64,000 nucleotides of DNA from Macrostomum lignano (lineage: Eukaryota): positions 124,001 to 188,000 of the forward strand of contig NIVC01000048.1 in the NCBI GenBank assembly GCA_002269645.1. Direction: 5' to 3'. Shown in pieces: positions 1-54,029 of the stretch; position 1 is the stretch's first letter, and every line of letters begins with the position of its first letter. The position numbers and the translations under genes were made by a program. A model generated the notes under the pieces. It was not told the DNA's origin. It worked only from the letters and a program-made list of their open reading frames with translations, and did not search any database.

Positions 1-92
1 TCCATCGAAACGGAAATAATAGTCATAGAAGATGCAGAAGACATAACATCTCAAGAATTCCCTCCGAGATATTTGAAATCTCAGCAATTCGA

Positions 93-612
93 TCCCCCAA
101 TAGCAAGCACCCCCAGATAGCAAGCATCCCCCAGATAGCAAGCATCCCCAGATAGCAAGCACCCCCAGATAGCAAGCATCCACCAGATAGCAAGTACCCA
201 CCAGATAGCAAGTACCCACCAGATAGCAAGCAATCCCCCAGATAGCAAGCACCCCCAGATAGCAAGCACCCCCCCCCCCAGATAGCAAGCACCCCACTCC
301 AGATAGCAAGCACCCCACCCCAGATAGCAAGCACCCCACCCCAGATAGCAAGCACCCCACCCCAGATAGCAAGCACCCCACCCCAGATAGCAAGCATCCC
401 ACCCCAGATAGCAAGCACCCCCTAGATAGTAAACACCCTCCAGATAGCAAGCACCCCACCCCAGATAGCAAGCACCCCACCCCAGATAGCAAGCACCCCC
501 TAGATAGTAAACACCCTCCAGATAGCAAGCACCCCACCCCAGATAGCAATCACCCCACCCCAGATAGCAAGCACCCCCTAGATAGTAAACACCCTCCAGA
601 TAGCAAGCACCC
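93..612. repeat. GATAGCAAGCA(C)n minisatellite (about 17-22-bp units), array unit I
   Basis: Tandem CCCCAGATAGCAAGCA units; flanks match 24811-25640. Confidence 0.95.
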
Positions 613-697
613 TAGCACCCCAGCGTTGCTTGTGCAATAATCCTTTTCTTAGCTAATGATAAAGAATTTAACTTATTTTATTTTATGACATTTTATG

Positions 698-1484
698 TGT
701 CCCAGGGCTCTTATTTATTCCTTTGTCTAGCCATACTTGCTGCCACCAAAGTTGTAACAGGTCTTTTGACTCCCTATGAGAATCCCACTAAATGCCACCA
801 AAGTTGTAATAAAGCTATTTCTCCTTAATAATTCTACTGGTTATTAATTGTCTTTCTACTGGTAGCGCATGTACTTCTATCGGTAGTGTATGTACTTCTA
901 TTGGTAGCGTATGTACTTCTATTGGTAGCGTATGTACTTCTATTGTACTTTCTGGCCTGAGCGGTCTAATAGCACTGTCTATTCTATTCCTATGCTTCCC
1001 CTAATATTATTCTCTCAGTCCTGGGCGTTCCCTGGATCAAAGGGTCACAGCTTATGCTCTTTCTCTGCCCTGAGGCGATCTTCTCTCGTTTTGAGGCGGT
1101 TCTCCTGCCCTGAGGCGAATTTACAATTTACTGCCCTGAGGCGGTTTCTCGCTTGTAGCGGTTTCTGATACTCCCAATTGGGGTTCTTATACTCTAAGAA
1201 ATGATTAAGTCTTTAAGCGATTTCAATATTTAGAACGAACTAAATTTGCTTATCGAAAACCGAGAGGCAGCAAACGGTTGCTTCCTCAAGTCTGCTCAGC
1301 GTGTCTATTTATACCCAAAATTCGTTATAGTTTAAACAAAATAATAATTGCAGAAATATTTTTGCAAACCACAACATTCAAACAAATATTTCGCGCAGAT
1401 TTGAATAAAGGTTTTTCTAAGAAAGGCAAACATAAAACGAGTAAAAATTCAAAAGTATTAGAGCTATTATTAATGCCTGTCTCA
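698..1484 (-). mobile_element. Solo LTR (787 bp)
   Basis: TG...CA termini; 4-bp TSD TATG (694-697, 1485-1488); the paralogous empty site GACATTTTATGCTTTACT is present near 25632-25650; TATAAATA on the minus strand at 1306-1313. Confidence 0.85.
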
Positions 1485-3653
1485 TATGCTTTACTATTTT
1501 AATATTCGTAAAAATACGTTATAACAATAAGATATTTAGCTCCTGATTTTCCTAAAAGTCATTTTTTGCCTATCTATAATCCTACTTAGCGAACGGAATA
1601 ATGGGGAGTACGAAATCTGCTATAGCAGGAAATCTGCTAGCCGAAATCTGCTAGCCGAAGTTTGCTAGCGAGAAATTTGCTTGCCGAAATCTGCTAGCCG
1701 AAGTTTGCTAGCCGAAATCTGCTAGCCGAAGTTTGCTAGCTGAAATGTGCTAGCCGAAATGTGCTAGCCGAAGTTTGCTAGCCGAAATCCGCTAGCCGAA
1801 ATCCGCTAGCCGAAATCTGCTAGCCGAAATGTGCTAGCCGAAATCTGCTAGCCGAAATCTGCTAGCCGAAATCCGCTAGCCGAAATCTGCTAGCCGAAGT
1901 TTGCTAGCTGAAATGTGCTAGCCGAAATGTGCTAGCCGAAATGTGCTAGCCGAAATCTGCTAGCCGAAGTTTGCTAGCTGAAATGTGCTAGCCGAAATGT
2001 GCTAGCCGAAATGTGCTAGCCGAAATGTGCTAGCCGAAATCTGCTAGCCGAAGTTTGCTAGCTGAAATGTGCTAGCCGAAATGTGCTAGCCGAAGTTTGC
2101 TAGCCGAAATCTGCTAGCCGAAGTTTGCTAGCCGAAATCTGCTAGCCGAAATCCGCTAGCCGAAATCTGCTAGCCGAAATGTGCTAGCCGAAGTTTGCTA
2201 GCAGGAATTTTGCTAGCGAGGATTTTGCTAGCTGCCTTGCTCTCGTAGCTGCTGCATGTTATTTGCTGTGTTTTGATTCCGATTTGAGCTGCTTTGATTC
2301 GTACGAGTAAATATATAACTTATATACCATATACTGCCACTACCAGCCATTAAGACTGAAAGTTGTGTGTATAGATAAGTTTAAATTTAACTACCTGAAC
2401 TACAGCTGCCTGAGCTACCTGAACTACGGCCTTACAGCTGATGATGCTAAAACATTATCAAATGTCTACGAGTAAAATAGGACAAAAAATATAAATGATT
2501 TTGATGATTTCCAAGTGCAGTTTTAGCATATACAGTACTTTAGCATACAGTAACACACATGTTGGTGTACAGTATCTATTGCTAGATACATGTATGTCCA
2601 AGGTACAATTTACTATAGCTATATGTATTGTTAATGTATAGATATTTTCTATCGCTTACGGCACTGTGTACAAGCAAAAACTCTATGCAGGTGTGGCCCA
2701 CAAGCTCTTACCCTGTGACCATGGATGTAAAATATTTTTTTTATTCAATAGCTTGTATATGAACTTTTCAATCCACCTACGTTAAAACCTAAATCTTATT
2801 TTCTTTTTGTCTATGACGTCATCTACTGATTGCGTTTTAAAACGTACATGTACGAGAACCCACGGAGAAGGCTAGGCGGCAGATTAAGTCGTCCAGATTG
2901 GACAATAAAAAATGTCTCTAGCAAATTACAACTTCGTAAATTGCTGTTCGCCGGTTTTGGTTAGATTATCGCTAGCAGATTTCGGCTAGCAAAATCCTCG
3001 CTTGCAAAATTCCTGCTAGCAAACTTCGGCTAGCAGATTTCGGCTAGCAGATTTCGGCTAGCGGATTTCGGCTAGCAGATTTCGGCTAGCAAACTTCGGC
3101 TAGCAGATTTCGGCTAGCACATTTCGGCTAGCACATTTCGGCTAGCACATTTCAGCTAGCAAACTTCGGCTAGCAGATTTCGGCTAGCACATTTCGGCTA
3201 GCACATTTCAGCTAGCAAACTTCGGCTAGCAGATTTCGGCTAGCAGATTTCGGCTAGCGGATTTCGGCTAGCAGATTTCGGCTAGCAAACTTCGGCTAGC
3301 AGATTTCAGCTAGCACATTTCGGCTAGCACATTTCGGCTAGCACATTTCAGCTAGCACATTTCGGCTAGCACATTTCGGCTAGCACATTTCGGCTAGCAC
3401 ATTTCGGCTAGCACATTTCAGCTAGCAAACTTCGGCTAGCAGATTTCGGCTAGCACATTTCGGCTAGCAAACTTCGGCTAGCAGATTTCGGCTAGCAGAT
3501 TTCGGCTAGCAAACTTCGGCTAGCAGATTTCGGCTAGCACATTTCAGCTAGCAAACTTCGGCTACTACTACTACTACTACTGACGGGGGGCGCAGGCGCC
3601 GCGAATAGGCCGCGAGGCCCCTATCGCAACCCCAAGGTAAAAGAGCACAAGGA

Positions 3654-8738
<5,085 letters not shown>

Positions 8739-8942
8739 TTAGCCAGCAGCCAACTACTTAGCAGCCACCTGCCCCGCAAAAAAGCAGCAGGGGGGATCCG
8801 TCCCCCACCAGCAGACCAAGACGAGGAAGCTAGCCGCTTCCACGCCAGGCCAGAACGAAAAGGAGGGGGAAGAGCCTCCTCGAAAAACGAAAAGCTGGCG
8901 GATGTCACAGAGTCCCTCGGTTTAAGTTGCCGTTTGCCCCCC

Positions 8943-10804
8943 GTTTGCTAGCCGAAATCTGCTAGCCGAAGTTTGCTAGCTGAAATGTGCTAGCCGAAAT
9001 GTGCTAGCCGAAGTTTGCTAGCCGAAATCCGCTAGCCGAAATCCGCTAGCCGAAATCTGCTAGCCGAAATGTGCTAGCCGAAATCTGCTAGCCGAAATCT
9101 GCTAGCCGAAATCCGCTAGCCGAAATCTGCTAGCCGAAGTTTGCTAGCTGAAATGTGCTAGCCGAAATGTGCTAGCCGAAATGTGCTAGCCGAAATCTGC
9201 TAGCCGAAGTTTGCTAGCTGAAATGTGCTAGCCGAAATGTGCTAGCCGAAATGTGCTAGCCGAAATGTGCTAGCCGAAATCTGCTAGCCGAAGTTTGCTA
9301 GCTGAAATGTGCTAGCCGAAATGTGCTAGCCGAAGTTTGCTAGCCGAAATCTGCTAGCCGAAGTTTGCTAGCCGAAATCTGCTAGCCGAAATCCGCTAGC
9401 CGAAATCTGCTAGCCGAAATGTGCTAGCCGAAGTTTGCTAGCAGGAATTTTGCTAGCGAGGATTTTGCTAGCTGCCTTGCTCTCGTAGCTGCTGCATGTT
9501 ATTTGCTGTGTTTTGATTCCGATTTGAGCTGCTTTGATTCGTACGAGTAAATATATAACTTATATACCATATACTGCCACTACCAGCCATTAAGACTGAA
9601 AGTTGTGTGTATAGATAAGTTTAAATTTAACTACCTGAACTACAGCTGCCTGAGCTACCTGAACTACGGCCTTACAGCTGATGATGCTAAAACATTATCA
9701 AATGTCTACGAGTAAAATAGGACAAAAAATATAAATGATTTTGATGATTTCCAAGTGCAGTTTTAGCATATACAGTACTTTAGCATACAGTAACACACAT
9801 GTTGGTGTACAGTATCTATTGCTAGATACATGTATGTCCAAGGTACAATTTACTATAGCTATATGTATTGTTAATGTATAGATATTTTCTATCGCTTACG
9901 GCACTGTGTACAAGCAAAAACTCTATGCAGGTGTGGCCCACAAGCTCTTACCCTGTGACCATGGATGTAAAATATTTTTTTTATTCAATAGCTTGTATAT
10001 GAACTTTTCAATCCACCTACGTTAAAACCTAAATCTTATTTTCTTTTTGTCTATGACGTCATCTACTGATTGCGTTTTAAAACGTACATGTACGAGAACC
10101 CACGGAGAAGGCTAGGCGGCAGATTAAGTCGTCCAGATTGGACAATAAAAAATGTCTCTAGCAAATTACAACTTCGTAAATTGCTGTTCGCCGGTTTTGG
10201 TTAGATTATCGCTAGCAGATTTCGGCTAGCAAAATCCTCGCTTGCAAAATTCCTGCTAGCAAACTTCGGCTAGCAGATTTCGGCTAGCAGATTTCGGCTA
10301 GCGGATTTCGGCTAGCAGATTTCGGCTAGCAAACTTCGGCTAGCAGATTTCGGCTAGCACATTTCGGCTAGCACATTTCGGCTAGCACATTTCAGCTAGC
10401 AAACTTCGGCTAGCAGATTTCGGCTAGCACATTTCGGCTAGCACATTTCAGCTAGCAAACTTCGGCTAGCAGATTTCGGCTAGCAGATTTCGGCTAGCGG
10501 ATTTCGGCTAGCAGATTTCGGCTAGCAAACTTCGGCTAGCAGATTTCAGCTAGCACATTTCGGCTAGCACATTTCGGCTAGCACATTTCAGCTAGCACAT
10601 TTCGGCTAGCACATTTCGGCTAGCACATTTCGGCTAGCACATTTCGGCTAGCACATTTCAGCTAGCAAACTTCGGCTAGCAGATTTCGGCTAGCACATTT
10701 CGGCTAGCAAACTTCGGCTAGCAGATTTCGGCTAGCAGATTTCGGCTAGCAAACTTCGGCTAGCAGATTTCGGCTAGCACATTTCAGCTAGCAAACTTCG
10801 GCTA
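8943..10804 (+). repeat. Direct duplicate of 1703-3564 (1,862 bp)
   Basis: Constant offset of 7240 at every block checked (1703/8943, 2281/9521, 2941/10181, 3541/10781), with the same order of minisatellite variants. Confidence 0.93.
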
Positions 10805-11324
10805 GCAGATTTCGGCTAGCACATTTCGGCTAGCAAACTTCGGCTAGCAGATTTCGGCTAGCAGATTTCGGCTAGCACATTTCGGCTAGCAAATTTCTCG
10901 CTAGCAAACTTCGGCTAGCAGATTTCCTGCTAGCAAATTTCATAGACCCGAATAATCTCCACCAGTAAATTTTTATATTAGCATACTCAGGACAATGAAT
11001 GTTGGTATATTTATTATGTACTACTCAAGAAAGTTTACCACTTGGCTAAGCTCAGAATGTCAAGTTGCGGGGCCAGACGTGCGTTCAGACGGGACTGAGG
11101 ACCTCAACAGTGACGTCTCAATGGCCTTCGACATGACAGCATCATGATATCGATATGGCCTGCAGCTACATCTGTGACGTACGCGGTTGCGGCACCCAAG
11201 ATCCGAAAAGGAGGACTGAAGCATGAGGGCGAACAAAACTTATCTCGTATGCCATAACGAAACGAGACGAGACGGATCGTCCCTTGAACATGTTTGGACG
11301 TCCAACAGCCGCAAAGAATCAACA

Positions 11325-12065
11325 AGAGAGCCGTGGTGATGAAACGGCTCATCGATTTTCTATCAATCTCTTGGAGGTCAGTACCGAGGATGGGCTGTCA
11401 CCAATTGCTGCATTCGGTACAATCGCATCTTCGATGCAGGAGCTCAAGGCTACTAAGTTTACCTGAACCTGTCGCACAGATTTTCTGACATTGACTGGCT
11501 GTCAGAGAGAGCCATTTTGAGTCCCAGGAATGACGCAGCTAATAGTATCAACTCCCAGCTGCTCAATGAGCTGCCTGGCAATATCATCAGCTACAAGTCA
11601 ATTGACACAACAATGACTGGTGACAATGCTGTAGAGTTTCCTATGTATTGAGCTCTTAAGCTCTCTAGAGCCTCCTGGAACGCCAACGCACAACCTGCAG
11701 TTAAAAGTGGGTGCACCAGTAATGCTACTGCACATTTTAAATGACCCACAGCTGTGTAAAACGGCACTAGAGGCTAATCGTCAAGCAACTCTTTCTGAAT
11801 TTGATTGAGGCAAAATTTGGGACAGGATCCGGCAAAGGGCAATCTGTGTTTATTCCCAGAATTCCAATTATACCATCGGACCCGCCTTTTCAATCGAAGC
11901 GAGTACAGTTTCCAGTGAAGGTCTGCTTTGCCATGATCATCAACAAAGCCCAAGGACAGTCGCTAAAGGTGGCCGGAATCAACTCAGTCACCCTGCTTCT
12001 CACATGGGCCAACTTTATGTTGCATGCTCACGCGTCGAAACTGCAGCTGGCCTCTTAATCCTTGC
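11325..12065 (+). pseudogene. Helitron RepHel (PIF1-type helicase) C-terminal remnant
   Basis: GDETAHRFSINLLEV, LEPPGTPTHNLQLKVGAP, VFIPRIPIIPSD, QFPVKVCFAMIINKAQGQSL, SHGQLYVACSRV; contains stops and frameshifts. Confidence 0.85.
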
Positions 12066-12234: not shown

Positions 12235-12867
12235 AGACCTACTTAAGCGCACTGAACAAAGTCGGATGCGCCGCTCTGTGCGCCCAGAACCAGCGCTGTC
12301 ATGCTTCAGAGTATACTGTATACATGCTTCAAGCAGCTGTTCGTGTTCGACAAGTGCAGCAAGTCGGTGAGGAGCTGCGGCTGCTCCAGGAGAGGCCGAG
12401 TGTTCGTCAAGCAGCGGCCGGGACTCGAGGCGGGCGCGCTGTGTCCGTCTGGCTACGGCATGGACCTGTGCGGAGTGAAGTACAGGCTGTACTCTGGCAT
12501 CGGGACGTGGTGGCCGAGCAGACAGAAGTGCGAGTCAGAGAGAGGTCTGGTCATCATGGCCGACGTGACTAGCGAGCAGGAGATGAGCCACGTGAACTCC
12601 ATCTACTCGAACTACAGCTCTGGACAATCGATCTGGCTCGGAGGCCGCCAGCCAGAAGGCAGTGCGGAGCCTCTGGGCGGCTGGTACTGGGTCGGCTGCA
12701 ACAACAGCGTTGATGCCGCTTTTTGGGCCGCTGGCCAGCCGAATAACAACGGTGGCGGAGAAAATGCAATTGGAAGACATTTCAATTTTATGGGTCTTAC
12801 GGATAACAGCGACACGAATGGTGCTGTTTCTAATGTTCTGTGCGAGTGCCTGTCGCCTTTTAACTGA
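12235..12867 (+). pseudogene. Lectin copy A: 5'-truncated chimeric inverted copy
   Basis: 12235-12301 resembles copy C (ETY.SALNKVGCAALCAQNQRC); 12334-12867 is the reverse complement of copy B; no signal peptide. Confidence 0.85.
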
Positions 12868-14266
12868 TTATGGGAAACTGCAGGCACCGCCAGACAAGAG
12901 GAACCGGATGGAGAGATTTAATCACAAAATTATATTTCTGAAGCTATCGAAGTGACCGTCAATAACCGTGTGAAGGTGTCCAAAATTGATTATATAACTA
13001 CATGTAATAATTCAAACATCCGGTCTGCGTATAGTACACAGATTTTTTATAAATTTCTCAATGAAAACTGACGCAATGTATTCAGAAAAATTCCAATAGA
13101 AGGGCCGAATAATAATCAATAACTGCTGGAACAGAGATGTTTAAAAGAGCTCCATTGTAAGTGTGTCTGTGGATCTCTGTCTGTTGGTTTTATCAAATCA
13201 AGTTTTTTGGAATTTGCAGCTTGTTCATTAGCCAAGCTTTTACTTCGATTTTTAAGCAAACCTTCTCTGCAATAAACGAAACTGCAGTTTGTTTTTTATT
13301 TAAAATCTGTTTGAGCTACTTAAATATAGTTGGCCTCAGTTATACTCGGAAGCATAAACAGTTTTCATCTAATGAACAAGCTGCAAATTCCAAAAAACTT
13401 GATTTGATAAAACCAACAGACAGAGATCCACAGACACACTTACAATGGAGCTCTTTTAAACATCTCTGTTCCAGCAGTTATTGATTATTATTCGGCCCTT
13501 CTATTGGAATTTTTCTGAATACATTGCGTCAGTTTTCATTGAGAAATTTATAAAAAATCTGTGTACTATACGCAGACCGGATGTTTGAATTATTACATGT
13601 AGTTATATAATCAATTTTGGACACCTTCACACGGTTATTGACGGTCACTTCGATAGCTTCAGAAATATAATTTTGTGATTAAATCTCTCCATCCGGTTCC
13701 TCTTGTCTGGCGGTGCCTGCAGTTTCCCATAATCAGTTAAAAGGCGACAGGCACTCGCACAGAACATTAGAAACAGCACCATTCGTGTCGCTGTTATCCG
13801 TAAGACCCATAAAATTGAAATGTCTTCCAATTGCATTTTCTCCGCCACCGTTGTTATTCGGCTGGCCAGCGGCCCAAAAAGCGGCATCAACGCTGTTGTT
13901 GCAGCCGACCCAGTACCAGCCGCCCAGAGGCTCCGCACTGCCTTCTGGCTGGCGGCCTCCGAGCCAGATCGATTGTCCAGAGCTGTAGTTCGAGTAGATG
14001 GAGTTCACGTGGCTCATCTCCTGCTCGCTAGTCACGTCGGCCATGATGACCAGACCTCTCTCTGACTCGCACTTCTGTCTGCTCGGCCACCACGTCCCGA
14101 TGCCAGAGTACAGCCTGTACTTCACTCCGCACAGGTCCATGCCGTAGCCAGACGGACACAGCGCGCCCGCCTCGAGTCCCGGCCGCTGCTTGACAAACAC
14201 CCGGCCTCTCCTGGAGCAGCCGCAGCTCCTCACCGACTTGCTGCACTTGTCGAACACGAACAGCTG
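12334..14266. repeat. Near-perfect inverted repeat, 898-bp arms with a 137-bp spacer
   Basis: 12334-13231 pairs with 13369-14266 (coordinate sum 26600); one mismatch seen, near 14194. Confidence 0.93.
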
Positions 14267-14479: not shown

Positions 14480-15091
14480 TTTTGATCGTAGCTGTCGGTA
14501 GCCTAGCTGCTGGGTTTTTTTAAAATTTGTCAAAGTATTAACAACAGACGATGCAAATGGCTGTTAACACAAAAATTTCCATTTACTAACCGATAATATT
14601 TGCTTTTTCCTGACCAATCGTGGGCTAGCTTTTGCGAAAATTTTTCATTGGTTTAAAAATTTTAATCCCCAGAGGTGAATGTCAAACCATGTTGACTGTG
14701 TCTTGGCCCTGGCAACCACGTGCAGCTAGTGCTGCGCAGGGATGTCCGTTGGTGCCGGTGTCCAGGAGGTGAATGGCTGCGCGCCCGGTAGCACTAAGGT
14801 ATCGCAGACGAGCTGGCACAACTTCTCGGGCCTGAAAACGTCAAAAAAGGTCTGGGTTCGGGCCAGAGGCAGGTGAGCTTGTCCTGAGTAAAGGCGGAAC
14901 ATTCAGAGATGAAGTCAACACCGGAAAAATGCAGAATGGGCATCCTTCACTGCAGATTTTCCCATGGAGGCGTGACCTGAGACCTGAGAGGACCATTGCT
15001 ACAGGGCCTTGATGTCCCTGCTGTTGAGTCCAAGCAGGGCCCTGTGAAAAACGAGAGATCGAGGGTCAGGGACGACCCAAAGAGGCACTGC

Positions 15092-16315: not shown

Positions 16316-16632
16316 CCCCGAGCAAGCATTCCCCAGATAGCAAGCATTCCCCAGATAGCAAGCATTCCCCAGATAGCAAGCATTCCCCAGATAGCAAGCA
16401 TTCCCCAGATAGCAAGCATTCCCCAGATAGCAAGCATTCCCCAGATAGCAAGCATTCCCCAGATAGCAAGCATTCCCCAGATAGCAAGCATTCCCCAGAT
16501 AGCAAGCATTCCCCAGATAGCAAGCATTCCCCAGATAGCAAGCATTCCCCAGATAGCAAGCATTCCCCAGATAGAAAACATTCCCCAGATAGCAAGCATT
16601 CCCCAGATAGCAAGCATTCCCCAGATAGCAAG
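16316..16632. repeat. 18-bp CCCCAGATAGCAAGCATT minisatellite, unit II (continues at 17578-17927)
   Basis: Homogeneous tandem units, split by a solo LTR. Confidence 0.95.
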
Positions 16633-17577: not shown

Positions 17578-18899
17578 CAAGCATAGCATAGCATAGCAAG
17601 CAAGCATTGATAGCAAGCATTCCCCAGATAGCAAGTATCTCCCCGATAGCAAGCATCCCTAGATAGCAAGAACCGATCCCCCTCCCAGATAGCAAGCATT
17701 CCCCAGATAGCAAGCATCCCTAGATAGCAAGAACCGACCCCCAAAAAAAGCAAGCATCCCCAGATAGCAAGCACCCCATAGATAGCAAGCACCCCTCCAC
17801 AAAAAAGCAAACATTCCCCATATAGCAAGCATTCCCCATATAGCAAGCATTCCCCAGATAGCAAGTATCTCCCCAGATAGCAAGCATCCCTGGATAGCAA
17901 GAACCGACCCCCCTCCCAGATAGCAATCTAGTAGTAGTCTCTTAGTCATCGAATGTAATAATTTTATCATCTATGTGCGATAATCCTTTTGTCATCTAGT
18001 GCAGTAATGGTTTTCTCATGTATTGCATTAATCACTTTTTCAGCCAGTGCAATAATCCATGTCTTAGCTAGAGATAAATAATTTAACTTTTAGTATGGCA
18101 TTGTATGCATTACTATTTTACTATTAGTAAAAATGAACTACAACTATTCGATCTTGTGCTCCTGGTTTTCATAAAAATCATTGGAAATCTATAATCCTAC
18201 TTAGCAGTCTGTACAGCAACTTTTTAATTTTTTATATACAGTGCAATGAATGTTGGTATATTTATTATGCACTACTCAAAATAGTACAGAGTAGCGCATG
18301 AGAAAATACAAAAATCGCAAGTCCACAGCCGGTACGTCTAGCCTAGCGGGGGCCCACGGTGGATCCACTTGGCTAGCCAGGGATGTCAAGTTGCAGGGCC
18401 AGCCGTGCATTGAGTCCGACACACAAACTCAGGTCAGGACTGGGGTCTGAGGACCTGTCGACAGTGGCGTCTCAGTGGCCATCGACATGACAGCTTCATG
18501 ACATCGATATGGACGTTGGCCAGGGCCTGCGGCTACATCTGTGAAGAACGCGGTTGCGACGCCCAAGACCCGAAAAGAAGAACTGCAGCATGAGGACCGA
18601 AAAAACAATAACGGGACAGGTAGTCCATTTTAAGAAATCAAACAAAAAATATAGCCTGCTTATTATCCTGTTTTCAATACATATTAAAAACGAAACCTCT
18701 GTCTGTGTGTCTGGCTGTACATGGATTGCTATGGACTCCCAAACCGCACAATCAAATGACACCAAATTTTGCACCCATCGTAAACTCATTACAGAGAAGG
18801 CTTTAGGTTACCTTGGAATCTCCTAATTTTAACTCTTCCTACTTAAAAGTGCAAAAGACTGCTAGCAAAACACGATTTTTTTAACTCAATCCTCCATAG

Positions 18900-20460: not shown

Positions 20461-23048
20461 GGTGGCCGGAATCAACTTGGGGTCATCCCGTTTCTCTCAC
20501 ATGGCCAACTTTATGTTGCATGCTCACGCGTTGAAATCTACAGCTAGCCTCTTCCTCTGCTCCCCGGGGGGGGGGGAATTTGGTGTATCTTCAAGCACTG
20601 CGATAAGCATCTGTGAAAGTCATTACAACTGGACTACATTCACAGACTGCATGGACTATAATATAGAAATTTTTCTAAGTCCAAGTTTTTTACGAGCTAC
20701 ATTTATCAGAAATACGAAGTTCCCTACTTTAATACGAGTAAATTTCTTGGTTACTAAGTTTTCAAACGTTCTTGACACAAGGGACCAACCCCAGAGCACG
20801 AAACTCAAAGACATTGGTTGAACTATTTGTTGCGAACCTTCTGAAGCAAGCATCAAGTAACCTTCCCTCCAGACCAGAATAGAAATTTGGCTTTGATTTG
20901 CTAAGAAATTGGCAACTTCAATACTAAATATCATTTTATCACTCCTCACACATGTTCCCTATCCAATTTTGCATTGTCTAGCATATTTACTCTGCTTAGC
21001 TTCTCTATAGTACTTAGACACTATTGTTAATTTTTCCGATTTCTCGATGTTGGAGTCTCATATTCTATTCTACGAGCTATTCTAGAAGTATACTTTTTAA
21101 AGCGAGTTTTCTCCAAGTTTTGTTTAAGTCTATTAACAAGTTCTTGTTTGAGTATGATTTTAGATTCGAGAATGTATGCAAAAATAGTTCCGGGGATCGG
21201 AATTCTGCGGGTTTCAACGGCTTATAGACTTATAATGAAGAAAAGCCAAGGGAGGCAAGAGAGGCAAGGCTGGAGAAAACTTAAGCATGCACAAATAATG
21301 AGGCAGCCAAGACAATGGAATCCAGCAAACATGTAGGGACCTCCAGTGGAATGCAGCAACGTAGGAAAAATTTACAGTAGCCATTAACCATTTCAAAGTT
21401 AATTGAAGCTCACCGGCGAGGCGGCTGACAGGGGAAGGTGGCTGCAGCCGGAGAATATTTGATGAGCCCAGCACAGGGGCCACTCTTGTGGAGGAGACCG
21501 ACGGCCAACCCCGAGGAACGTAGCAACCGAGGGATGGACGCGCGGACAAGAGGGCAGTGAAAGACTTCCCCCAAATACTCTAACTCAACCAGAGTAAATT
21601 GATGAGTCTAACCGCCTCACCCTCGCCCCCTCCCCGTAGCAACTCGCGTGTTAAATGCTAATCCTATTGCAAGCGCTGTTTGTGAAAAACTTGCCGTCGC
21701 TAACCACGCGACATCCAACTCAAACCATCAACGGCAGGGGATGAAATTGGGGGTATTTTTGAGAATAGACGGGAGCTCAGCCCTAGGGGCACTTCTTTCT
21801 TCCTCGCTTTTAAGGAGCTTAATTCACAAACTGAAGTCCCATGCTCTATTTGAGTTAACGACAAAGATGAGACAAGGAATTGAGAATATAAAAAACCGCC
21901 ATCTCGGTTGTAAGCTCTCAAGAACACAGCAGAATCCACTAGAACTAGAAGATGGCATAACATTAGAAAAATAGAGTCTTGCATGAGCGATTCCCCCTAT
22001 GAGTCCATTTCAGTAATTACCCATGAGCCTTGAATCTCAACAATTACCCATTATAAGCCTCATAAATTCCCGCCCGAGCCTTGACAGCAAAACAATTTAC
22101 CCTGTGAGTCTCATGACATCTTAGCAATTTACAATGAGTCATTTATGTTGGACAGGGTGAAGTCAAGTCTCAGTTGCAATGCAGTCTTGTTCGAATGTAA
22201 TTTGTTGTTCGAATCGTTAATTTTTCGATAATTAAAATTAGATGCACTCATACATTCATTTGAGCAATCTTTGACCCGCGAAGCCACTTGGTGGGGTAAT
22301 GCGAACCGGCCTTACACGGATAGCTTCTCAGAAATGATCCATCATCGAGTACACAGTGTTGCTTGGCGTTGTATAAAAACTCCAAACTACGAAAGAATGA
22401 TTACAAGTAGCTTTTGATGCAAACTGTTTGTGCATCAGACTATTACTGAGCTGAGGTCAACTATATTTAAGAAGATCAAACAGATTTTAAATTAAAACTG
22501 ACTGCAGTTTCGTTTATGGCAGAGATTTGTTTAAAAATTGAAGTAGAAGCTTGTCTCATGAACAAGCTGCAGCATCAAGTTAATAGCTGGATTTTTAATT
22601 GTGGCTTCACGCTCGACAAGTGCCGAAGAAAACTGTATTGAATGCACGGTACTAGGGATTTGTGCTTTTAAAAAAGTAAATGTATGTATGAGCAAGGTAG
22701 TAGTATCTAGTGCGTCGTAATAAAATTCGTTAATAACTATAAAAAATTGATTTGATAAAACCAACAGACAGAGATCCACAGACACTACAATGGAGCCCTT
22801 TTAAACATCTGCCTTCCGGCAGCTATTGATTATTATTCGGCCCTTATATTAGAGTATTTTGAATACATTGCGTAAGGTTTGTTAATAATTTAACAAAAAT
22901 CTGTGCACTGTAAGCAGACGGGATGTTTGAATTATGACATGCGGTTATATAAAAAATTTGGACGCTTACACACAGTTGTGACGAGCACTTTTGATTAAAT
23001 CTGTCCATCCGGTTCCTCTTACTTGGCGGTGCCTGCAGTGTCTCAGAA

Positions 23049-23792
23049 TCAGTTAAAAGGCGACAGGCACTCGCACAGAACATTCGGAACAGCACCGTAT
23101 GTGTCGCTACTATCCGTGAGACCCATTTTATTGACTTGTCTCGCGATTACATTTTCTCCGCCACCGTTGTTATTCGGCTGGTCAGTGGCCCAAAAAGCGG
23201 GATCAACGTTGATGTTGCAGCCGACCCAGTACCAGCCGCCCAGAGGCTCCGCACTACCTTCTGGCTGAAGTCCTCCGAGCCAGAAGTTCGAATTACTACC
23301 ATTGGTGAAGATCCAGTCCACGTGGCTCATCTCTTGCTCGCTGGTCACGTCGGCCATGATGACCAGACCGCTCTCTGACTCGCACTTCTGCCTGCTCGGC
23401 AACCACGTCCCGATGCCAGAGTACAGCCTGTACTTCACTCCGCACAGGTCCATGCCGTAGCCAGACGGACACAGCGCGCCCGCCTCGAGTCCCGGCCGCT
23501 GCTTGACGAACACCCGGCCTCTCCTGGAGCAGCCGCAGCTCCTCACCGACTTGCTGCACTTGTCGAACACGAACAGCTGGCACGGATCCTTGGGCAGGGT
23601 AAACGCCTGACAGCGCTGGTTTTGGGCGCACAGAGCGGCGCACCCGACTTTGTTGAGTGCGCTTGAGTAGGTCTCAACAAACTCATCGTTGATGCAGAGG
23701 CTGCCGTCAATGAGGCTGTACACCTGTTCGCTGGCTGTGGCGAGGCCGAGTACAAGACTCATCCAGGCCACAATATTCGATACGCTGGTCAT
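23049..23792 (-). CDS. Lectin copy C: secreted PAN/apple + C-type lectin protein (247 aa)
   Basis: Intact intronless paralog of 13733-14479. Confidence 0.82.
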   Translation of the reverse strand: MTSVSNIVAWMSLVLGLATASEQVYSLIDGSLCINDEFVETYSSALNKVGCAALCAQNQRCQAFTLPKDPCQLFVFDKCSKSVRSCGCSRRGRVFVKQRPGLEAGALCPSGYGMDLCGVKYRLYSGIGTWLPSRQKCESESGLVIMADVTSEQEMSHVDWIFTNGSNSNFWLGGLQPEGSAEPLGGWYWVGCNINVDPAFWATDQPNNNGGGENVIARQVNKMGLTDSSDTYGAVPNVLCECLSPFN

Positions 23793-24901
23793 TTTTGCTC
23801 GTAGCGTCGGTAAGGCTGCTGGGTTTTTTAATTTGTCAGAGTAATACAAATAAACCATGTAAATTGCTTTTAGCAGTAAAATTTCCAACAACTAGCCGAT
23901 TATATTTGCTTTTTTCTGACCAATCATGTGCTAGCTTTCTTGGGAAATTTTTCATTGGTGGAAGTGAAAAAGAAAATGAGGTGAGTGTCACACCATGTTG
24001 ACTGTGCCTTGGCCCTGGCAACCACGTGCACCGATGCCGCGCAGGGGGATCCGGTGGTGCCGGTGTCCGCAGCGGTGTGCCTCTCTGGAGAGTCCTGCAG
24101 GTGAATGGTCGCTCGCCCGGTAGCCCTAAGGTATCGAGGCCGAGCTGGCAGATATTTTCGGGTCTGAAAACGTCAAAGAACGTCCGGGTTTGTGCCCGAG
24201 GTAGGCGGGGCATTCACAGATGAAGTGCTGCACATTCTTGACACCGGAGATGCAGAATGGGCATCCTCACTGCAGATTTTCCCATGGAGGTAGCGTTTTT
24301 TAGCAAAGCACCCATGACCTGATAGGGCCATTGCTACCGGGCCTTGGTGTCCCTGCCGTTGAGTCCTAGCAGGGTCCTACGGAACGGGAGAGGGACAGGG
24401 GATTGCAACAAAGACTCCCCCAGTGGGAGCCAGAGAAAGAAATATTTTAGCTCCAGAGTGCCCCAGACGAGACCTTACCAAACGAAAATTAAATTCTTTT
24501 CTGGGTTCTTTTGACCACTTTGACCTCCCCGATATGGGTCCCCCATTTCAGTTGAGCCTTGACATCTTAGCAATTCCCCCAGCCTTAACATCTCATGTTA
24601 TATGTGCGCTATATGAACTATTGCGTATAAGACGCACGTTAAATTTCATCAATTCATTATGTGCTAGAATTGAGAGCTCTTAATGAGCCGCCACTAAAAG
24701 AAAGAGAAAGAACAAGCCACTGCTGCAGGATAAAAAAGAAAGTACGTTGGTAACTCGCTACAATTAAACAATCACATACTTCGACTTTAATGTCGTTAAT
24801 CTAGAAGAGTCCATCGAAACGGAAATAATAGTCATAGAAGATGCAGAAGACATAACATCTCAAGAATTCCCTCAGAGATATTTGAAATCTCAGCAATTCG
24901 A

Positions 24902-25560
24902 TCCCCCAATAGCAAGCATCCCCCAGATAGCAAGCATCCCCAGATAGCAAGCACCCCCAGATAGCAAGCATACACCAGATAGCAAGTACCCACCAGACAG
25001 CAAGCACCCCACCCCAGATAGCAAGCACCCCACCCCAGATAGCAAGCACCCCACCCCAGATAGCAAGCACCCCTAGATAGTAAACACCCTCCAGATAGCA
25101 AGCACCCCACCCCAGATAGCAAGCACCCCACCCCAGATAGCAAGCACCCCACCCCAGATAGCAAGCACCCCCTAGATAGTAAACACCCTCCAGATAGCAA
25201 GCACCCCACCCCAGATAGCAAGCACCCCACCCCAGATAGCAAGCACCCCACCCCAGATAGCAAGCACCCCACCCCAGATAGCAAGCACCCCACCCCAGAT
25301 AGCAAGCACCCCACCCCAGATAGCAAGCACCCCACCCCAGATAGCAAGCACCCCACCCCAGATAGCAAGCACCCCACCCCAGATAGCAAGCACCCCACCC
25401 CAGATAGCAAGCACCCCACCCCAGATAGCAAGCACCCCACCCCAGATAGCAAGCACCCCACCCCAGATAGCAAGCACCCCACCCCAGATAGCAAGCACCC
25501 CACCCCAGATAGCAAGCACCCCCTAGATAGTAAACACCCTCCAGATAGCAAGCACCCTAG
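24902..25560. repeat. GATAGCAAGCACCCCACCCCA minisatellite, unit III
   Basis: Tandem units; flanks nearly identical to 1-690. Confidence 0.95.
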
Positions 25561-25757
25561 CACCTAAGCGTTGCTTGTGCAATAATCCTTTTCTTAGCTA
25601 ATGATAAAGAATTTAACTTATTTTATTTTATGACATTTTATGCTTTACTATTTTAATATTCGTAAAAATACGTTATAACAATAAGATATTTTGCTCCTGA
25701 TTTTCCTAAAAGTCATTTTTTGCCTATCTATAATCCTACTTAGCGATCGGAATAATC

Positions 25758-27296
25758 GGGAGTACGAGATCTGCAGGAAATCTGCTAGCCGAAGTTTGCT
25801 AGCGAGAAATTTGCTTGCCGAAATCTGCTAGCCGAAGTTTGCTAGCCGAAATCTGCTAGCCGAAGTTTGCTAGCCGAAATCTGCTAGCCGAAATCTGCTA
25901 GACGAAATCTGCTAGCCGAAGTTTGCTAGCGAGAAGTTTGCTAGCCGAAATCTGCTAGCCGAAATCTGCTTGCCGAAATATGCTAGCTGAAATATGCTAG
26001 CCGAAATATGCTAGCCGAAATATGCTAGCCGAAATATGCTAGCCGAAATATGCTAGCCGAAATATGCTAGCCGAAATGTGCTAGCCGAAATCTGCTAGCC
26101 GAAATATGCTAGCCGAAATCTGCTAGCCGAAATGTGCTAGCCGAAATATGCTAGCCGAAGTTTGCTAGCCGAAATCTGCTAGCCGAAATCTGCTAGCCGA
26201 AGTTTGCTAGCCGAAATCTGCTAGCAGGAAATTTGCTAGCTGCCTTGCTCTCGTAGCTGTTGCATGTTATTTGCTGTGTTTTGATTCCGATTTGAGCTGC
26301 TTTGATTCGTACGAGTAAATATATAACTTATATACCATATACTGCCACTACCAGCCATTAAGACTGAAAGTTGTGTGTATAGATAAGTTTAAATTTAACT
26401 ACCTGAACTACAGCTGCCTGTGCTACCTGAACTACGGCCTTACAGCTGATGATGCTAAAACATTATCAAATGTCTACGAGTAAAATAGGACAAAAAATAT
26501 AAATGATTTTGATGATTTCCAAGTGCAGTTTTAGCATGTACAGTACTTTAGCATACAGTAACACACATGTTGGTGTACAGTATCTATTGCTAGATACATG
26601 TATGTCCAAGGTACAATTTACTATAGCTATATGTATTGTTAATGTATAGATATTTTCCATCGCTTACGGCACTGTGTACAAGCAAAAACTCTATGCAGGT
26701 GTGGCCCACAAGCTCTTACCCTGTGATCATGGATGTAATATATTTTCTTTATTCAATAGCTTGTATATGAACTTTTCAATCCACCTACGTTAAAACCTAA
26801 ATCTTATTTTCTTTTTGTCTATGACGTCATCTACTGATTGCGTTTTAACACGTACATGTACGAGAACCCACGGCGAAGGCTAGGCGGCAGATTAAGTCGT
26901 CCAGATTGGACAATAAAAAATGTCTCTAGCAAATTACAACTTCGTAAATTGCTGTTCGCCGGTTTTGGTTAGATTATCGCTAGCAGATTTCGGCTAGCAA
27001 AATCCTCGTTGCAAAATTCCTGCTAGCAAACTTCGGCTAGCAGATTTCGGCTAGCAGATTTCGGCTAGCGGATTTCGGCTAGCAGATTTCGGCTAGCAAA
27101 CTTCGGCTAGCAGATTTCGGCTAGCACATTTCGGCTAGCACATTTCGGCTAGCACATTTCAGCTAGCAAACTTCGGCTAGCAGATTTCGGCTAGCACATT
27201 TCGGCTAGCAAACTTCGGCTAGCAGATTTCGGCAAGCAAATTTCTCGCTAGCAAACTTCGGCTAGCAGATTTCCTGCTAGCAAATTTCATAGACCC
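25758..27296. mobile_element. Uninterrupted copy of the foldback element (1,539 bp)
   Basis: Same core as 2230-2970, shorter GCTAGC arms, perfect 8-bp TSD GAATAATC (25750-25757, 27297-27304). Confidence 0.85.
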
Positions 27297-27669
27297 GAAT
27301 AATCTCCACCAGTAAATTTTTATATTAGCATACTCAGGACAATGAATGTTGGTATATTTATTATGTACTACTCAAGAAAGTTTACCACTTGGCTAAGCTC
27401 AGAATGTCAAGTTGCGGGGCCAGGCGTGCGTTCAGACGGGACTGAGGACCTCAACAGTGACGTCTCAATGGCCTTCGACATGACAGCATCATGATATCGA
27501 TATGGCCTGCAGCTACATCTGTGACGTACGCGGTTGCGGCACCCAAGATCCGAAAAGGAGGACTGAAGCATGAGGGGCGAACAAAACTTATCTCGTATGC
27601 CATAACGAAACGAGACGAGACGGATCGTCCCTTGAACATGTTTGGACGTCCAACAGCCGCAAAGAATCA

Positions 27670-28190
27670 ACAAGAGAGCCGTGGTGATGAAACGGCTCAT
27701 CGATTTTCTATCAATCTCTTGGAGGTCAGTACCGAGGATGGGCTGTCACCAATTGCTGCATTCGGTACAATCGCATCTTCGATGCAGGAGCTCAAGGCTA
27801 CTAAGTTTACCTGAACCTGTCGCACAGATTTTCTGACATTGACTGGCTGTCAGAGAGAGCCATTTTGAGTCCCAGGAATGACGCAGCTAATAGTATCAAC
27901 TCCCAGCTGCTCAATGAGCTGCCTGGCAATATCATCAGCTACTAGTCAATTGACACAACAATGACTGGTGACAATGCTGTAGAGTTTCCTATGTATTGAG
28001 CTCTTAAGCTCTCTAGAGCCTCCTGGAACGCCATCGCACAACCTCCAGTTAAAAGTGGGTGCTACTGCGCAATTTAAATGCCCCAAAGCTGTGTAACGGC
28101 ACCAGGCTAATCGTCAAGCAACTCTTTCCGAATTTGATTGAGGCAAAAATTGGGACTGGATCCGGCAAAAGGCAATCTGTGTTTATTCCT
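27670..28190 (+). pseudogene. Helitron helicase remnant (paralog of 11325-11860)
   Basis: Near-identical to the unit I remnant; a degenerate GC palindrome (ACCCGGCCGGT) at ~28268 may be a 3' hairpin. Confidence 0.8.
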
Positions 28191-31896: not shown

Positions 31897-32571
31897 AAAA
31901 TTAGATGCACTCATACATTGATTTGAGCAATCTTTGACCCGCGAAGCCACTTGGCGGTGATGCGAACCGGCCTTAGCACGGATCGCTTCTCAGAAATGAT
32001 CCATTGAGTAAATTATGTTGCTTTGCGTTGTAGAAAAACTCCAAACTACGAAAGAATGATGACAAGTAACTTTCGATGAAAACTGTTTATGCTTCAGAGT
32101 ATAACTGATGCCAACTATATTTAAGTAGCTCAAACAGATTTTAAATAAAAAACAAACTGCAGTTTCGTTTATTGCAGAGAAGGTTTGCTTAAAAATCGAA
32201 GTAAAAGCTTGGCTAATGAACAAGCTGCAAATTCCAAAAAACTTGATTTGATAAAACCAACAGACAGAGATCGACAGGACACACTACAATAGAGCTCTTT
32301 TAAACATCTCTCTTCCAGCATTTATTGATTATTATTCGGCCCTTCTATTGGAATTTTTCTGAATACATTGCGTCAGTTTTTATTGAGAAATTTATAAAAA
32401 ATCTGTGTACTGTAAGCTGGGATGTTTGAATTATTACATGTAGTTATATAATAAATTTTGGACACTTACACACGGTTATTGACGGTCACTTTGATAGCCT
32501 CAGTAAAATATTTTTGTGATTAAATCTGTCCATCCGGTTCCTCTTGTCTGGCGGTGCCTGCAGTTTCCCAT

Positions 32572-32868
32572 AATCAGTTAAAAGGCGACAGGCACTCGCA
32601 CAGAACATTGGAAACAGCACCGTTCGTGTCGCTGATTTCATTAATACCCAATAGACCCTCGAATCTTCCAATTAAATTATCTTTGTCATCGTACGCTCGT
32701 AATTATTCGGCTGGCCAGTGGCCCAAAAAGCGGCATCAACGCTGATGTTGCAGCCGACCCAGTACCAGCCGCCCAGAGGCTCCGCACTGCCTGTTGGCTG
32801 GCGGCCTCCGAGCCAGATCGATTGTCCAGAGCTGTAGTTTGAGTAGATGGAGTCCACGTGGCTCATCT
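32572..32868 (-). pseudogene. Lectin copy D: 3' fragment (second half of the CTL domain) with a frameshift
   Basis: MSHVDSIYSNYSSGQSIWLGG...SDTNGAVSNVLCECLSPFN*; 5' half deleted. Confidence 0.88.
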
Positions 32869-34682: not shown

Positions 34683-35086
34683 AGATTAGAAACCACTTCA
34701 TAAGATTAGAAACCACTTCATAAGATTAGAAACCACTTCATAAGATTAGAAACCACTTCATAAGATTAGAAACCACTTCATAAGATTAGAAACCACTTCA
34801 TAAGATTAGAAACCACTTCATAAGATTAGAAACCACTTCATAAGATTAGAAACCACTTCATAAGATTAGAAACCACTTCATAAGATTAGAAACCACTTCA
34901 TAAGATTAAGAAACCACTTCATAAGATTAGAAACCACTTCATAAGATTAGAAACCACTTCATAAGATTAAGAAACCACTTCATAAGATTAAGAAACCACT
35001 TCATAAGATTAGAAACCACTTCATAAGATTAAGAAACCACTTCATAAGATTAAGAAACCACTTCATAAGATTTAGAAACCACTTCA
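34683..35086. repeat. 20-bp minisatellite AGATTAGAAACCACTTCATA
   Basis: About 20 tandem units. Confidence 0.95.
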
Positions 35087-35894
35087 TGATACTCGTACTC
35101 TTTGCAAATCAACCCTTAATTAACTAATGATTAGTATCGCTGTGTAGAAAAAAACGTTGCCCCAGAAATGTATCATTAAAAAAAAATTTTAAAACTCTCT
35201 ATGAAGCTGACTTTCTGCTTAGTCTATATGCCTGTTAATGTCTGCCAAAAACGCGGCTATTGTGCCTATTGAATGATGGTCGAAAACGGATTTATATTAT
35301 GACTTTTCATTTTACGAGCGTGTAGGGGCAGCCAGCCGCGAGCAGTCAATTACCGGTAGAGTAGAATACGCCCCTGTGCTCAAATTTTGTGGCGCAACGT
35401 ACAGTCTGCCATTATCCCCCAAGCAGTCCGCAGTTATCTGACGCACCAGTTTGCAGCTATACGCTCATAAGTATGGAGAAACTACCTCAGCAGTTTGCAG
35501 TCTGTCCCCTGTGCAGTCTGCAATGATCCCTTCGACAATCTGCTGTTCCCCTCAGCAATCTGCAGTCATTCCATTTGCAATTAGCAACTGTTCCCTTAAC
35601 AATTCTCATTTATTCCCTCATCAGTCTGCAGTTCTCGTCTCGACCGGCTCCTCAGGCTCCTCAGCAAACTGCAATTTTCCTTTTAACAATCTAAAAATTT
35701 TCGGTACATACAGGCAGTGGGATCACTAATACTCCAAGCAGCTTTTTACAAATCAAATTTGTTTAGCGACTTGTGCCGAATAGACAAAAATAGTTCATTT
35801 TTTAGTTCATTATTAAGTGTGCCTTGTTAGTTAAGCAAAAATGTTCCAAGTAGTCGATGCACAAGCTACAAAAAAATAAATTTAATTTTAACTG

Positions 35895-37559: not shown

Positions 37560-38147
<588 letters not shown>

Positions 38148-38466
38148 GGATAGAGATCAGATCCACAGACAACATTATAATGGAGCCCTTTTAAACATAT
38201 CTGTATTCGAGCAGTTATTAATTATTATTCGGCATTTCTATCAGGATGATCTTAAAGTCGAGCTGATTTGCCTACCGTTTCAGATAGTTGCATTGAGAAA
38301 TTTAACAGACTACTTTATACAGGAGATTTTTTCATGAATAGTTATTCACTTTTGGAAACTATTCAAAGTTATTGATAGTCACTTTCATAACGTTAGCAAT
38401 GTAGTTTTAAGAATAAATTTCTTCATTCGACTCCTCTTGTCGGCTGGTATCTGCAGTTTCTCAGAA

Positions 38467-39210
38467 TTAAGCAAATGGCGACAGGCACTCGCACAGGACA
38501 TTGGAAATAGCATCGTACTTGCCGCCGATATCCGTAAGACCCATAAAATCCAGATACTTTGAAATTACATTTTCTCCTCCGAGGAAATTGTCGGGCTGAT
38601 CCTTAGCCCAGAAGCTGCCAACGCTGGTGTTGCAGCCGACCCAGTACCAGCCGCCCAGAGGCTCCGCACTGCCTGCTGGCTGGAGGCCTCCGAGCCAGAT
38701 CGATTGTCCAGAGCTGTAGGTTGAGTAGATGGAGTTCACGTGGCTCATCTCCTGCTCGCTGGTCACGTCGGCCATGATGACCAGACCGCTCTCTGACTCG
38801 CACTTCTGCCTGCTCAGCCACCACGTCCCGATGCCAGAGTACAGCTTGTACTTCACTCCGCACAGGTCCATGCCGTAGCCAGACGGACACAGCGCGCCCG
38901 CCTCGAGTCCCGGCCGCTGCTTGACGAACACCCGGCCTCTCCTGGAGCAGCCGCAGCTCCTCACCGACTTGCTGCACTTGTCGAACACAAACAGCTGGCA
39001 CGGACCGTCAGCCAGGCTGAACGCCTGACAGCGCAGCTTCCGGGAGCACAGAGAGGCGCAGGCCAGCTTTCTGACCACGGCTGGGTGGAACTCGACGAAT
39101 TCGGTATTGATGCAGAGACTGCCGTCAATGAGGCTGTACTGCTGCTCGTTGGCATTGGTGAGGCCAAGGACAAGAGTCATCCAGGCCACAATGTTCGATA
39201 CGCTGAGCAT
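38467..39210 (-). CDS. Lectin copy E: secreted PAN/apple + C-type lectin protein (247 aa)
   Basis: Intact intronless paralog of copies B and C. Confidence 0.82.
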   Translation of the reverse strand: MLSVSNIVAWMTLVLGLTNANEQQYSLIDGSLCINTEFVEFHPAVVRKLACASLCSRKLRCQAFSLADGPCQLFVFDKCSKSVRSCGCSRRGRVFVKQRPGLEAGALCPSGYGMDLCGVKYKLYSGIGTWWLSRQKCESESGLVIMADVTSEQEMSHVNSIYSTYSSGQSIWLGGLQPAGSAEPLGGWYWVGCNTSVGSFWAKDQPDNFLGGENVISKYLDFMGLTDIGGKYDAISNVLCECLSPFA

Positions 39211-39644
39211 TTTTGCTCGTAGCTGTCGGTAAAATGTTTTGTTTAAGAAATTGGTCAAAGTAATAACGAGAGACGATGCGAATCGCTTTTATAAAAACAT
39301 TTTTAGCAAGCGGATTCTATTTGATTTTTTTGCCCACTCGTGTCTCGTTTCCGAGAATTTTTTTATTTGTTGAAAAAATTGAATTTCCTGCGGTGAATGC
39401 CAAACTACAGTGACTTTGTCCTGACTCAGCTAGAGGGGGCCCCGCGGGGCACCGGATGCAGCTTTGAGTCTTCGCCGCCAATTTCGCTAACCCCTGGCAA
39501 CCACGGGAAGCAATGCTGCGCAGGGAGATCCGGTAGTGCCGGCGTCCTCAGCGCGGTCCTCCTCCGGAGTCCAGGAGGTGGGTGGTTAGAGAACGAGTAG
39601 AGAACGAGGTTCACGGCTGAGCTGGCTGAGCCTGCAGCTGGACT

Positions 39645-51073: not shown

Positions 51074-51374
51074 CTGGGTTTATACAAGTACAACAAAAAA
51101 ACTACTTATAAAATGAATAAAAAGCAAACAAGTTCATGATTTGGTTCAAAACTATGCTGTCTACTATTTGATGAAGTTCTAACAACACTGTCTTTAGACT
51201 ATTAGTCAGTAGTAGAGTAAGTTCCTATAACAATAAAACATTATATTTAAATGAGCACATTAATTAATTATTTAAACGGCAATATGACTCTACATTTTGT
51301 TGTACAGTGGGACAGGTAATGGGCTTTAAGTTGTCGGTTGCACTAAGCTCTGTTTTTTAGTTTGCAATATAAAA

Positions 51375-53936: not shown

Positions 53937-54029
53937 GACGGCGTTGCAATGGGGAATCAAACACGAGTACGTATTAAAAACTCGGCAGGATAACCAACGA
54001 GGATGAATTTTAGCTTGAGCCTTTAAATT

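Follow-up and report, generated by a model that had tools for sequence, protein, structure and literature searches.

A 64-kb stretch of the genome of the flatworm Macrostomum lignano, referred to here as the window, contains a full-length long interspersed nuclear element (LINE) at 3565-8942 that is bracketed by two identical direct copies of a 1,862-bp segment. The LINE encodes an apurinic/apyrimidinic endonuclease (APE) and RNase H, and it interrupts the right arm of a foldback structure that resembles the Foldback (FB) elements of Drosophila. This arrangement was probably produced by one recent event of target-primed reverse transcription (TPRT), in which the insertion was coupled to a kilobase-scale tandem duplication and left a giant target-site duplication (TSD); this interpretation does not depend on a sequence motif shared by the two breaks. 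All coordinates are positions in the window, and the results concern a single locus as represented by the assembly sequence.

The first copy of the duplication (1703-3564) spans the foldback core together with the adjacent inner parts of both arms, 530 bp of the left one and 580 bp of the right one. The second copy is located at 8943-10804. By exact comparison at an offset of 7240, the two copies form one maximal run of identity of 1,862 bp with 0 mismatches and 0 indels. The run ends abruptly on both sides, with A at 1702 against C at 8942 and C at 3565 against G at 10805. Both copies abut the element with no bases in between, and the LINE is therefore flanked by a direct duplication of at least 1 kb, whereas a canonical TSD measures a few to a few tens of bp. 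An initial annotation of this DNA had described the repeat as directly bracketing the element and had called for an exact alignment of its copies, which now reveals 0 differences over 1,862 bp. The junction words that it listed were also recovered as written, namely ...AAACTTCGGCTA / CTACTACTACTACTACTGACGGGG on the plus strand and ...TTCGGCTAGCAAAC / GGGGGGCAAACGGCAAC on the minus strand. When the entire window was compared with itself by BLAST, no second long perfect direct repeat emerged, and general assembly stutter across the window was rejected on this ground.

The target of the insertion is a foldback. Each of its arms is built of a tandemly repeated 14-bp unit with the consensus GCTAGCAGATTTCG, and the two arms are inverted relative to each other. 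The left arm (1611-2232) contains ~44 units that read A[T/C]TTCGGCTAGCNN on the minus strand; it was delineated by Tandem Repeats Finder (TRF), which reports an array of period 14 at 1611-2202, and by the inverted-repeat pairs I2-I25. The inner part of the right arm occupies 2985-3564, within a 14-bp array at 2971-3564, and the arm continues at 10805-10941, where its outer 137 bp are present in single copy (TRF array 10211-10941). The arms are 620-730 bp long and 85-87% complementary. Between them lies the core, a non-repetitive spacer of 752 bp (2233-2984), which has an identical copy at 9473-10224 by BLAST and contains no open reading frame (ORF) of at least 80 aa in the ORF list. When 3564 and 10805 are joined to reconstruct the empty site, the join is continuous and the rows of the array stay in 14-bp phase. 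The foldback of the initial annotation is thus real. Within the unit (e.g. at 3023-3564), the conserved core GCTAGC is perfectly palindromic over its 6 bp. Variants of the unit, among them AG, AC, AA and GG types and one with TTCAG, follow higher-order patterns along the arrays.

A paralogous locus at 24810-28189, which is 97-99% identical and is not the allelic site, serves as the empty-site comparison. By BLAST and TRF, it has the same flanks and one foldback, composed of a left arm (25777-26240), a single core (26241-26992, 98.8% identical) and a right arm (26979-27288), with no LINE and no duplication. The left flank matches between 1485-1610 and 25639-25764, and the right flank between 10942-11856 and 27289-28189 with 96.9% identity (BLAST). 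Because the paralogue has one core and no LINE, the duplication appears to be derived, locus-specific and coincident with the LINE, and a single insertion-coupled duplication is the simplest history. Because the duplicated copies differ by 0%, against 1.2-3% between the paralogues, the duplication is evidently much younger than the paralogy. The paralogous block as a whole (~3.4 kb; 1-11856 against 24810-28189) is 88-99% identical and comprises a 21-bp satellite, a short unique stretch, the foldback and the 0.9-kb right flank. The locus that carries the LINE also has a 787-bp indel at 698-1484, with TATG on both sides.

The inserted element (3565-8942, minus strand) is a full-length retrotransposon of 5,378 bp of the non-LTR type (LTR, long terminal repeat), recognized by matches to Pfam Exo_endo_phos_2, RVT_1 and RNase_H and to UniRef proteins. 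It is single copy in the window, where BLAST matches it only to itself and detects no terminal repeats; it has neither LTRs nor terminal inverted repeats, and its 3' end is a simple repeat. The 5' untranslated region (UTR; 8394-8942) begins with the element 5' end that reads GGGGGGCAAACGGCAAC, in which the G run may be of untemplated or cap-derived origin. ORF1 (7470-8393) encodes 307 aa from the ATG at 8393, the position at which the matches to M. lignano proteins also begin, and no Pfam domain was found in it, even at E = 5. ORF2 (3654-7470) was traced by reading frames, Pfam and tblastn (frames -2, -1 and -3). It encodes an APE domain (PF14529 Exo_endo_phos_2, E = 1.9e-21) N-terminal to the reverse transcriptase (PF00078 RVT_1, E = 4.3e-30, full profile 1-205), RNase H C-terminal to the reverse transcriptase (PF00075 RNase_H, E = 4.5e-13, residues 840-968 of a 1,139-aa frame) and a C-terminal Cys/His motif. 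These domain tests identify an APE-type, RNase H-bearing LINE, in agreement with the initial annotation, which had recognized a LINE with an APE domain. The ATG of ORF2 at 7470 overlaps the stop codon of ORF1 by one base (7468-7472, minus strand), an arrangement compatible with translation of ORF2 by termination-reinitiation. A short 3' UTR precedes the (TAG)5 tail (3565-3579), and at the junction the adjoining target CTA on the plus strand makes a sixth repeat of microhomology.

Two 1-nt deletions interrupt the APE region of ORF2, and each of them falls in a run of C, one near 7165 and the other near 7031. Relative to the 99% identical protein P0001, the run within 7158-7170 is shortened from C5 to C4 and that within 7016-7033 from C7 to C6 (minus strand). 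The N-terminal half of the APE domain is readable in two other frames, matching P0001, which reads through both frame changes (...NDTP/RAIALV... and ...DVPPP/LLQELA...). The deletions may be consensus errors, slippage of the reverse transcriptase or real mutations. Exact-protein look-ups for P0002 and for the 1,003-aa ORF of the window returned no record.

Protein searches retrieved dozens of UniRef entries of M. lignano that are 95-100% identical to the proteins of the element, and the best named matches are uncharacterized proteins. Many of the M. lignano gene models in UniRef fuse parts of the LINE to unrelated host domains. Because of these numerous near-identical proteins and their varied fusion partners, the family is young, abundant and probably dispersed in M. 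lignano. The fusions suggest dispersed rather than satellite-specific insertion, with no hotspot evident. Distant relatives on metagenomic or Logan contigs share the ORF1/APE/RT/RNase H layout and have a total length near 5.2 kb, about the length of the present element. In the closest relative for which DNA is available (L001, 55% identity, on a JGI metagenome contig), a (ATG/TGA)n tail abuts a (GTGA)n microsatellite target (positions 4950-5211 of L001). This suggests that a simple-repeat tail sharing bases with the target is typical of the lineage, and that priming may take place on targets that match the tail. The relatives L002-L004 are 35-40% identical; the tail of L002 is (TTGGAAC)3, and its flanks share no common word of at least 10 nt, so no TSD was recovered there. 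Some of the 35%-identical relatives carry DUF4780 in ORF1.

By TPRT geometry, the priming nick lies on the plus strand between 3564 and the pre-insertion position 3565 (now 10805), ...AAACTTCGGCTA^GCAGAT, where the caret marks the break. At this 3' junction the target reads ...GGCTA and runs on the plus strand into (CTA)5, which is complementary to the (UAG)n tail; the RNA tail can base-pair with the end left by the nick, as is ordinary for TPRT. The second break lies on the minus strand between 1703 and 1702, ...TTCGGCTAGCAAAC^TTCGGCTAGCAG, and is joined to the 5' end of the element without microhomology.

These junctions can be accommodated in the following scheme. A full-length, RNase H-bearing APE-type LINE inserted very recently into the right arm of the FB-like foldback. 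As the sequence shows, a plus-strand nick at ...TTCGGCTA^GCAG left a 3' CTA that matches the (UAG)n tail, and cDNA synthesis started from this end by TPRT. The minus-strand 3' end that became joined to the 5' end of the element would have been located at GCAAAC^TTCGGC in the opposite arm, at a distance of 1.86 kb. This end could have been reached in two ways: the second break may have been made directly in the left arm, or a nearby canonical second-strand end may have been extended by about 1.86 kb on a sister or homologue template and then joined to the cDNA. The two routes yield an identical final sequence. For human L1, whose 'large TSDs' measure 1-10 kb, a break-induced-replication-like extension has been proposed (bioRxiv 10.1101/2024.12.14.628481). 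As for the foldback, displaced or nascent strands might fold on themselves, easing unwinding or causing stalling and dissociation in the second arm. In a folding calculation, the single-stranded duplicated segment forms 491 inter-arm pairs and reaches -717 kcal/mol, whereas shuffled sequences reach about -210. PMC10164571 reports that widely spaced, diverged inverted repeats interact once they are in long single-stranded DNA. From such modeling, folding of displaced, resected or nascent strands appears plausible. The foldback probably contributes only indirectly, and help from self-pairing or stalling is conjecture. A precise double nick of one motif is neither required nor supported.

The single TPRT event is supported by the abutting 1,862-bp copies, the full LINE of a young family, the CTA/(CTA)5 microhomology, the in-phase empty site, the LINE-free paralogue with its single core and the precedents from L1. 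Several points weigh against it. The arrangement is known from one instance, and the presence of both junctions on one molecule is putative, as given by the assembly. The LINE exists in many nearly identical copies, and an assembler could have made a wrong join through its interior; the public M. lignano assemblies were built on noisy PacBio continuous long reads (CLR) polished with short reads, and the two C-run frameshifts in this copy may be consensus errors. As judged from the sequence, the 1.86-kb distance fits a distant second nick and extension of a nearby end equally well. The second break can be placed to within about 6-8 nt, a margin that stems from the putative 5' end of the family.

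A more direct role of the foldback was proposed in the initial annotation, in which the APE endonuclease would have nicked TTCGGCTA^GC once on each strand in opposite arms, brought into proximity by a hairpin or cruciform, and the 1.86-kb stagger would have been filled in. Both breaks do fall in the arms and in the same unit variant (AC TTCGGCTA GCAG, with GCAA before it), and because the arms are inverted, each broken strand reads the same sequence. However, TTCGGCTA is the satellite consensus and occurs in 41 of the ~52 right-arm and 34 of the ~44 left-arm units. Since ~80% of the units carry it, any break in the array falls within 7 nt of a copy, and a motif near a break is nearly uninformative; the same motif is indeed present in both arms, as had been stated, but trivially so. 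The shared unit variant is found in 11/52 right-arm and 7/44 left-arm units, corresponding to a probability of a chance match of roughly 0.16-0.2. Moreover, the breaks are at unit offsets 10 and 2 (ACTTCGGCTA^GCAG against AC^TTCGGCTAGCAG), 8 nt out of phase, and a same phase of the breaks was rejected accordingly. GCAAAC is present a second time at the 5' end of the element, 6 nt inward, a repetition that the initial annotation had pointed out, and a second nick after TTCGGCTA is conceivable only if these 6 nt are credited to the element or 8 nt were trimmed. Nor would such nicks be possible only in an inverted repeat, because the palindromic GCTAGC core provides CTA^G locally on both strands of every unit. 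The geometry of the fold is also unfavorable. The best arm-to-arm register (87.4% complementary) and the minimum free energy fold of the DNA both pair 3564 with 1765 and 1703 with 10866, which places the breaks 62 nt from mirror positions (50 nt in a second register); only slipped registers of low identity bring them to 6-8 nt, and mirror symmetry was rejected. In a cruciform each break would be on a hairpin of its own, one about 137 bp and the other about 92 bp away from the junction, with 62 nt between them along the stem. They are near the foldback ends, as had been claimed, at measured distances of about 92 and 137 bp where ~105 and 145 bp had been given, and their proximity on extrusion is not supported. 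Cruciform extrusion from duplex DNA is itself unlikely because of the 752-bp spacer and the 13-15% divergence of the arms, features that PMC10164571 reports to reduce inverted-repeat structure in duplex DNA. Insertion into a plus-strand hairpin with a canonical 8-bp stagger was rejected by reasoning, as it predicts an inverted arrangement and a direct one is observed. On the other hand, the R2 protein, of the restriction-like endonuclease (RLE) type, performs second-strand cleavage on an open four-way junction in vitro, a step that the same paper calls undetermined for APE LINEs (PMC6895275), and L1 ORF2p reportedly cleaves the second strand where the helix is distorted. Taken together, the double nick of one motif is unlikely. 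The same low likelihood is assigned to the broader proposal that foldback geometry set the size of the duplication. Here, during a transient single-stranded or branched state of the segment, the LINE endonuclease or a host structure-specific nuclease would have cut both strands close to the base of the folded arms, and the whole interior of the foldback would have become the 'target site'. If this were true and general, inverted repeats hit by LINEs would recurrently give rise, in the germline, to tandem amplification of foldback or palindromic elements and to the seeds of higher-order satellites.

The remaining explanations dispense with a giant TSD. In an assembly artefact, junctions from different molecules or alleles would have been joined through the multi-copy LINE, or consensus stutter would have arisen in the foldback or satellite. 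Zero differences over 1,862 bp and the many 95-100% identical LINE copies are compatible with such an error, and the two C-run deletions in ORF2 resemble residual consensus errors. M. lignano is a hidden polyploid whose redundant, satellite-rich sequence is hard to assemble from PacBio CLR data (for the PacBio data of the public DV1 assemblies, see PMC5730564). However, even a mis-join presupposes that the family inserted twice, independently and in the same orientation, in one 2-kb foldback, the junctions bear ordinary TPRT hallmarks, and the perfect long direct repeat is the only one in the window. Reads of about 2.5 kb suffice to anchor each junction in unique flank. An artefact is therefore unlikely, although it is the rival to which most weight is given. 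The requirement for two insertions recurs if LINEs entered at 1702/1703 and 3564/3565 on sister chromatids, homologues or homeologues and unequal crossing-over within the LINE followed. The product would have the same sequence as a giant TSD, and the family is active and abundant. Yet two same-orientation insertions within 2 kb and a recombination would all have to be recent enough to leave 0 differences, and if the endonuclease reads an oriented 8-mer, insertions in opposite arms should be oppositely oriented. The UniRef fusions to many unrelated host domains, which point to dispersed insertion, likewise argue against a hotspot, and this history is very improbable. Least credible of all is that a tandem foldback existed first and that the LINE then inserted at its junction, with loss of everything from the outer right arm of copy 1 through any spacer to the outer left arm of copy 2. 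By construction, identity would then end where the LINE begins and ends. Against this, the paralogue has one foldback between the same flanks, and unequal exchange cannot duplicate the foldback alone because its arms are mutually inverted. The in-phase 3564/10805 join also argues against a pre-existing tandem, and zero divergence would need a duplication as recent as the insertion.

Several other features were observed in the window. A near-perfect inverted repeat at 12334-14266 has 898-nt arms (12334-13231 and 13369-14266) that are 99.8% complementary and separated by a 137-nt spacer, and diverged copies of this family are located at 22741-24378, 32072-32868 and 38343-39405. On the minus strand, 14733-15050 and 24011-24373 weakly match the C-terminal parts of other LINEs at the protein level. 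A long open frame on the plus strand (44794-46713), in the GC-richest part of the window, encodes a doublecortin domain and the N-terminal half of a protein kinase domain; by these domains it probably represents one exon of a host gene for a doublecortin-like kinase. Mini- and microsatellite arrays are exceptionally dense, with periods of 4, 14, 18-21, 23, 28 and 33 bp, and include (AGAT)149 and a recurring CCCCAGATAGCAAGCA family. They are located at 94-612, 16321-16632, 17609-17912, 24938-25557, 34683-35087, 37560-38154, 47151-48391, 50214-51074, 52157-52753, 53034-53670 and 54029-54677. Such a density is in line with reports that the M. lignano genome is rich in satellites.

RNase H-bearing APE LINEs with simple-repeat tails belong to the I group (I, Nimb, Ingi, Tad1, LOA and R1), and the tail of the Drosophila I factor is (TAA)n. 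The present element resembles this group in having ORF1 and an ORF2 with APE, RT, RNase H and a C-terminal Cys/His motif, a trinucleotide tail and a one-base ORF1/ORF2 overlap, a likeness judged by domains; unlike the group, its ORF1 has no recognized Pfam domain. The target is comparable to Drosophila-type FB elements, which have long inverted arms of short tandem repeats around a central loop. It shares with them inverted arms of 620-730 bp, built of 14-bp units around a 752-bp core, and at least two copies in the window. In contrast to what is expected of FB-like transposition, the second foldback copy sits in the same paralogous flanks as the first, within the same larger block, and the two copies may reflect segmental duplication.

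For the recognition of branched DNA by LINE proteins, R2 is a precedent, and a foldback could mimic such a substrate, although the present locus bears no sign that a branched structure formed. Another RLE-type LINE, the site-specific R9 of rotifers, is reported to have a TSD of exceptional length (Gladyshev and Arkhipova, 2009). Like the present case, R9 has a TSD far above the usual 5-20 bp, which in R9 results from a fixed stagger of two nicks. Unlike the present case, the R9 duplication is reproducible, site-specific and, at a size that is reportedly 126 bp, about 15-fold shorter; the insertion studied here is a single APE-type event with no sign of a fixed stagger.

The closest parallel is human L1. 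Tandem duplications of 1-10 kb, termed 'large TSDs', bracket L1 insertions in cancer genomes and in experimental clones, and they have been interpreted as arising from the reciprocal end (bioRxiv 10.1101/2024.12.14.628481). [quoted passage not shown] The initial annotation had presented LINE-driven kilobase-scale duplication as a new route, and in this respect it was anticipated by the L1 work. If confirmed, the M. lignano locus would be a clean case of a germline LINE insertion with a kilobase-scale tandem duplication outside mammals and the L1 clade, with perfect junctions and a full-length element, and it would imply that 'large TSDs' are general to TPRT intermediates and not peculiar to L1 in tumours. 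It would also supply a natural foldback substrate for asking whether secondary structure affects the second-strand break or the stop of repair synthesis, a question that a single case cannot answer. In common with the large TSDs of L1, a direct duplication in the kilobase range flanks a single LINE whose 3' junction bears the endonuclease and tail signature. The two differ in that the flatworm sequence is germline or assembly sequence, whereas the L1 cases come from somatic tumours or cell culture. They also differ in the element, which here is full length, RNase H-bearing and ended by a (TAG)n tail, and in the duplicated segment, which here comprises the inside of a foldback and has its two breakpoints within the satellite arms. 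The locus is thus a germline, non-L1, flatworm example of the known class of large TSDs, unusually large and not unprecedented.

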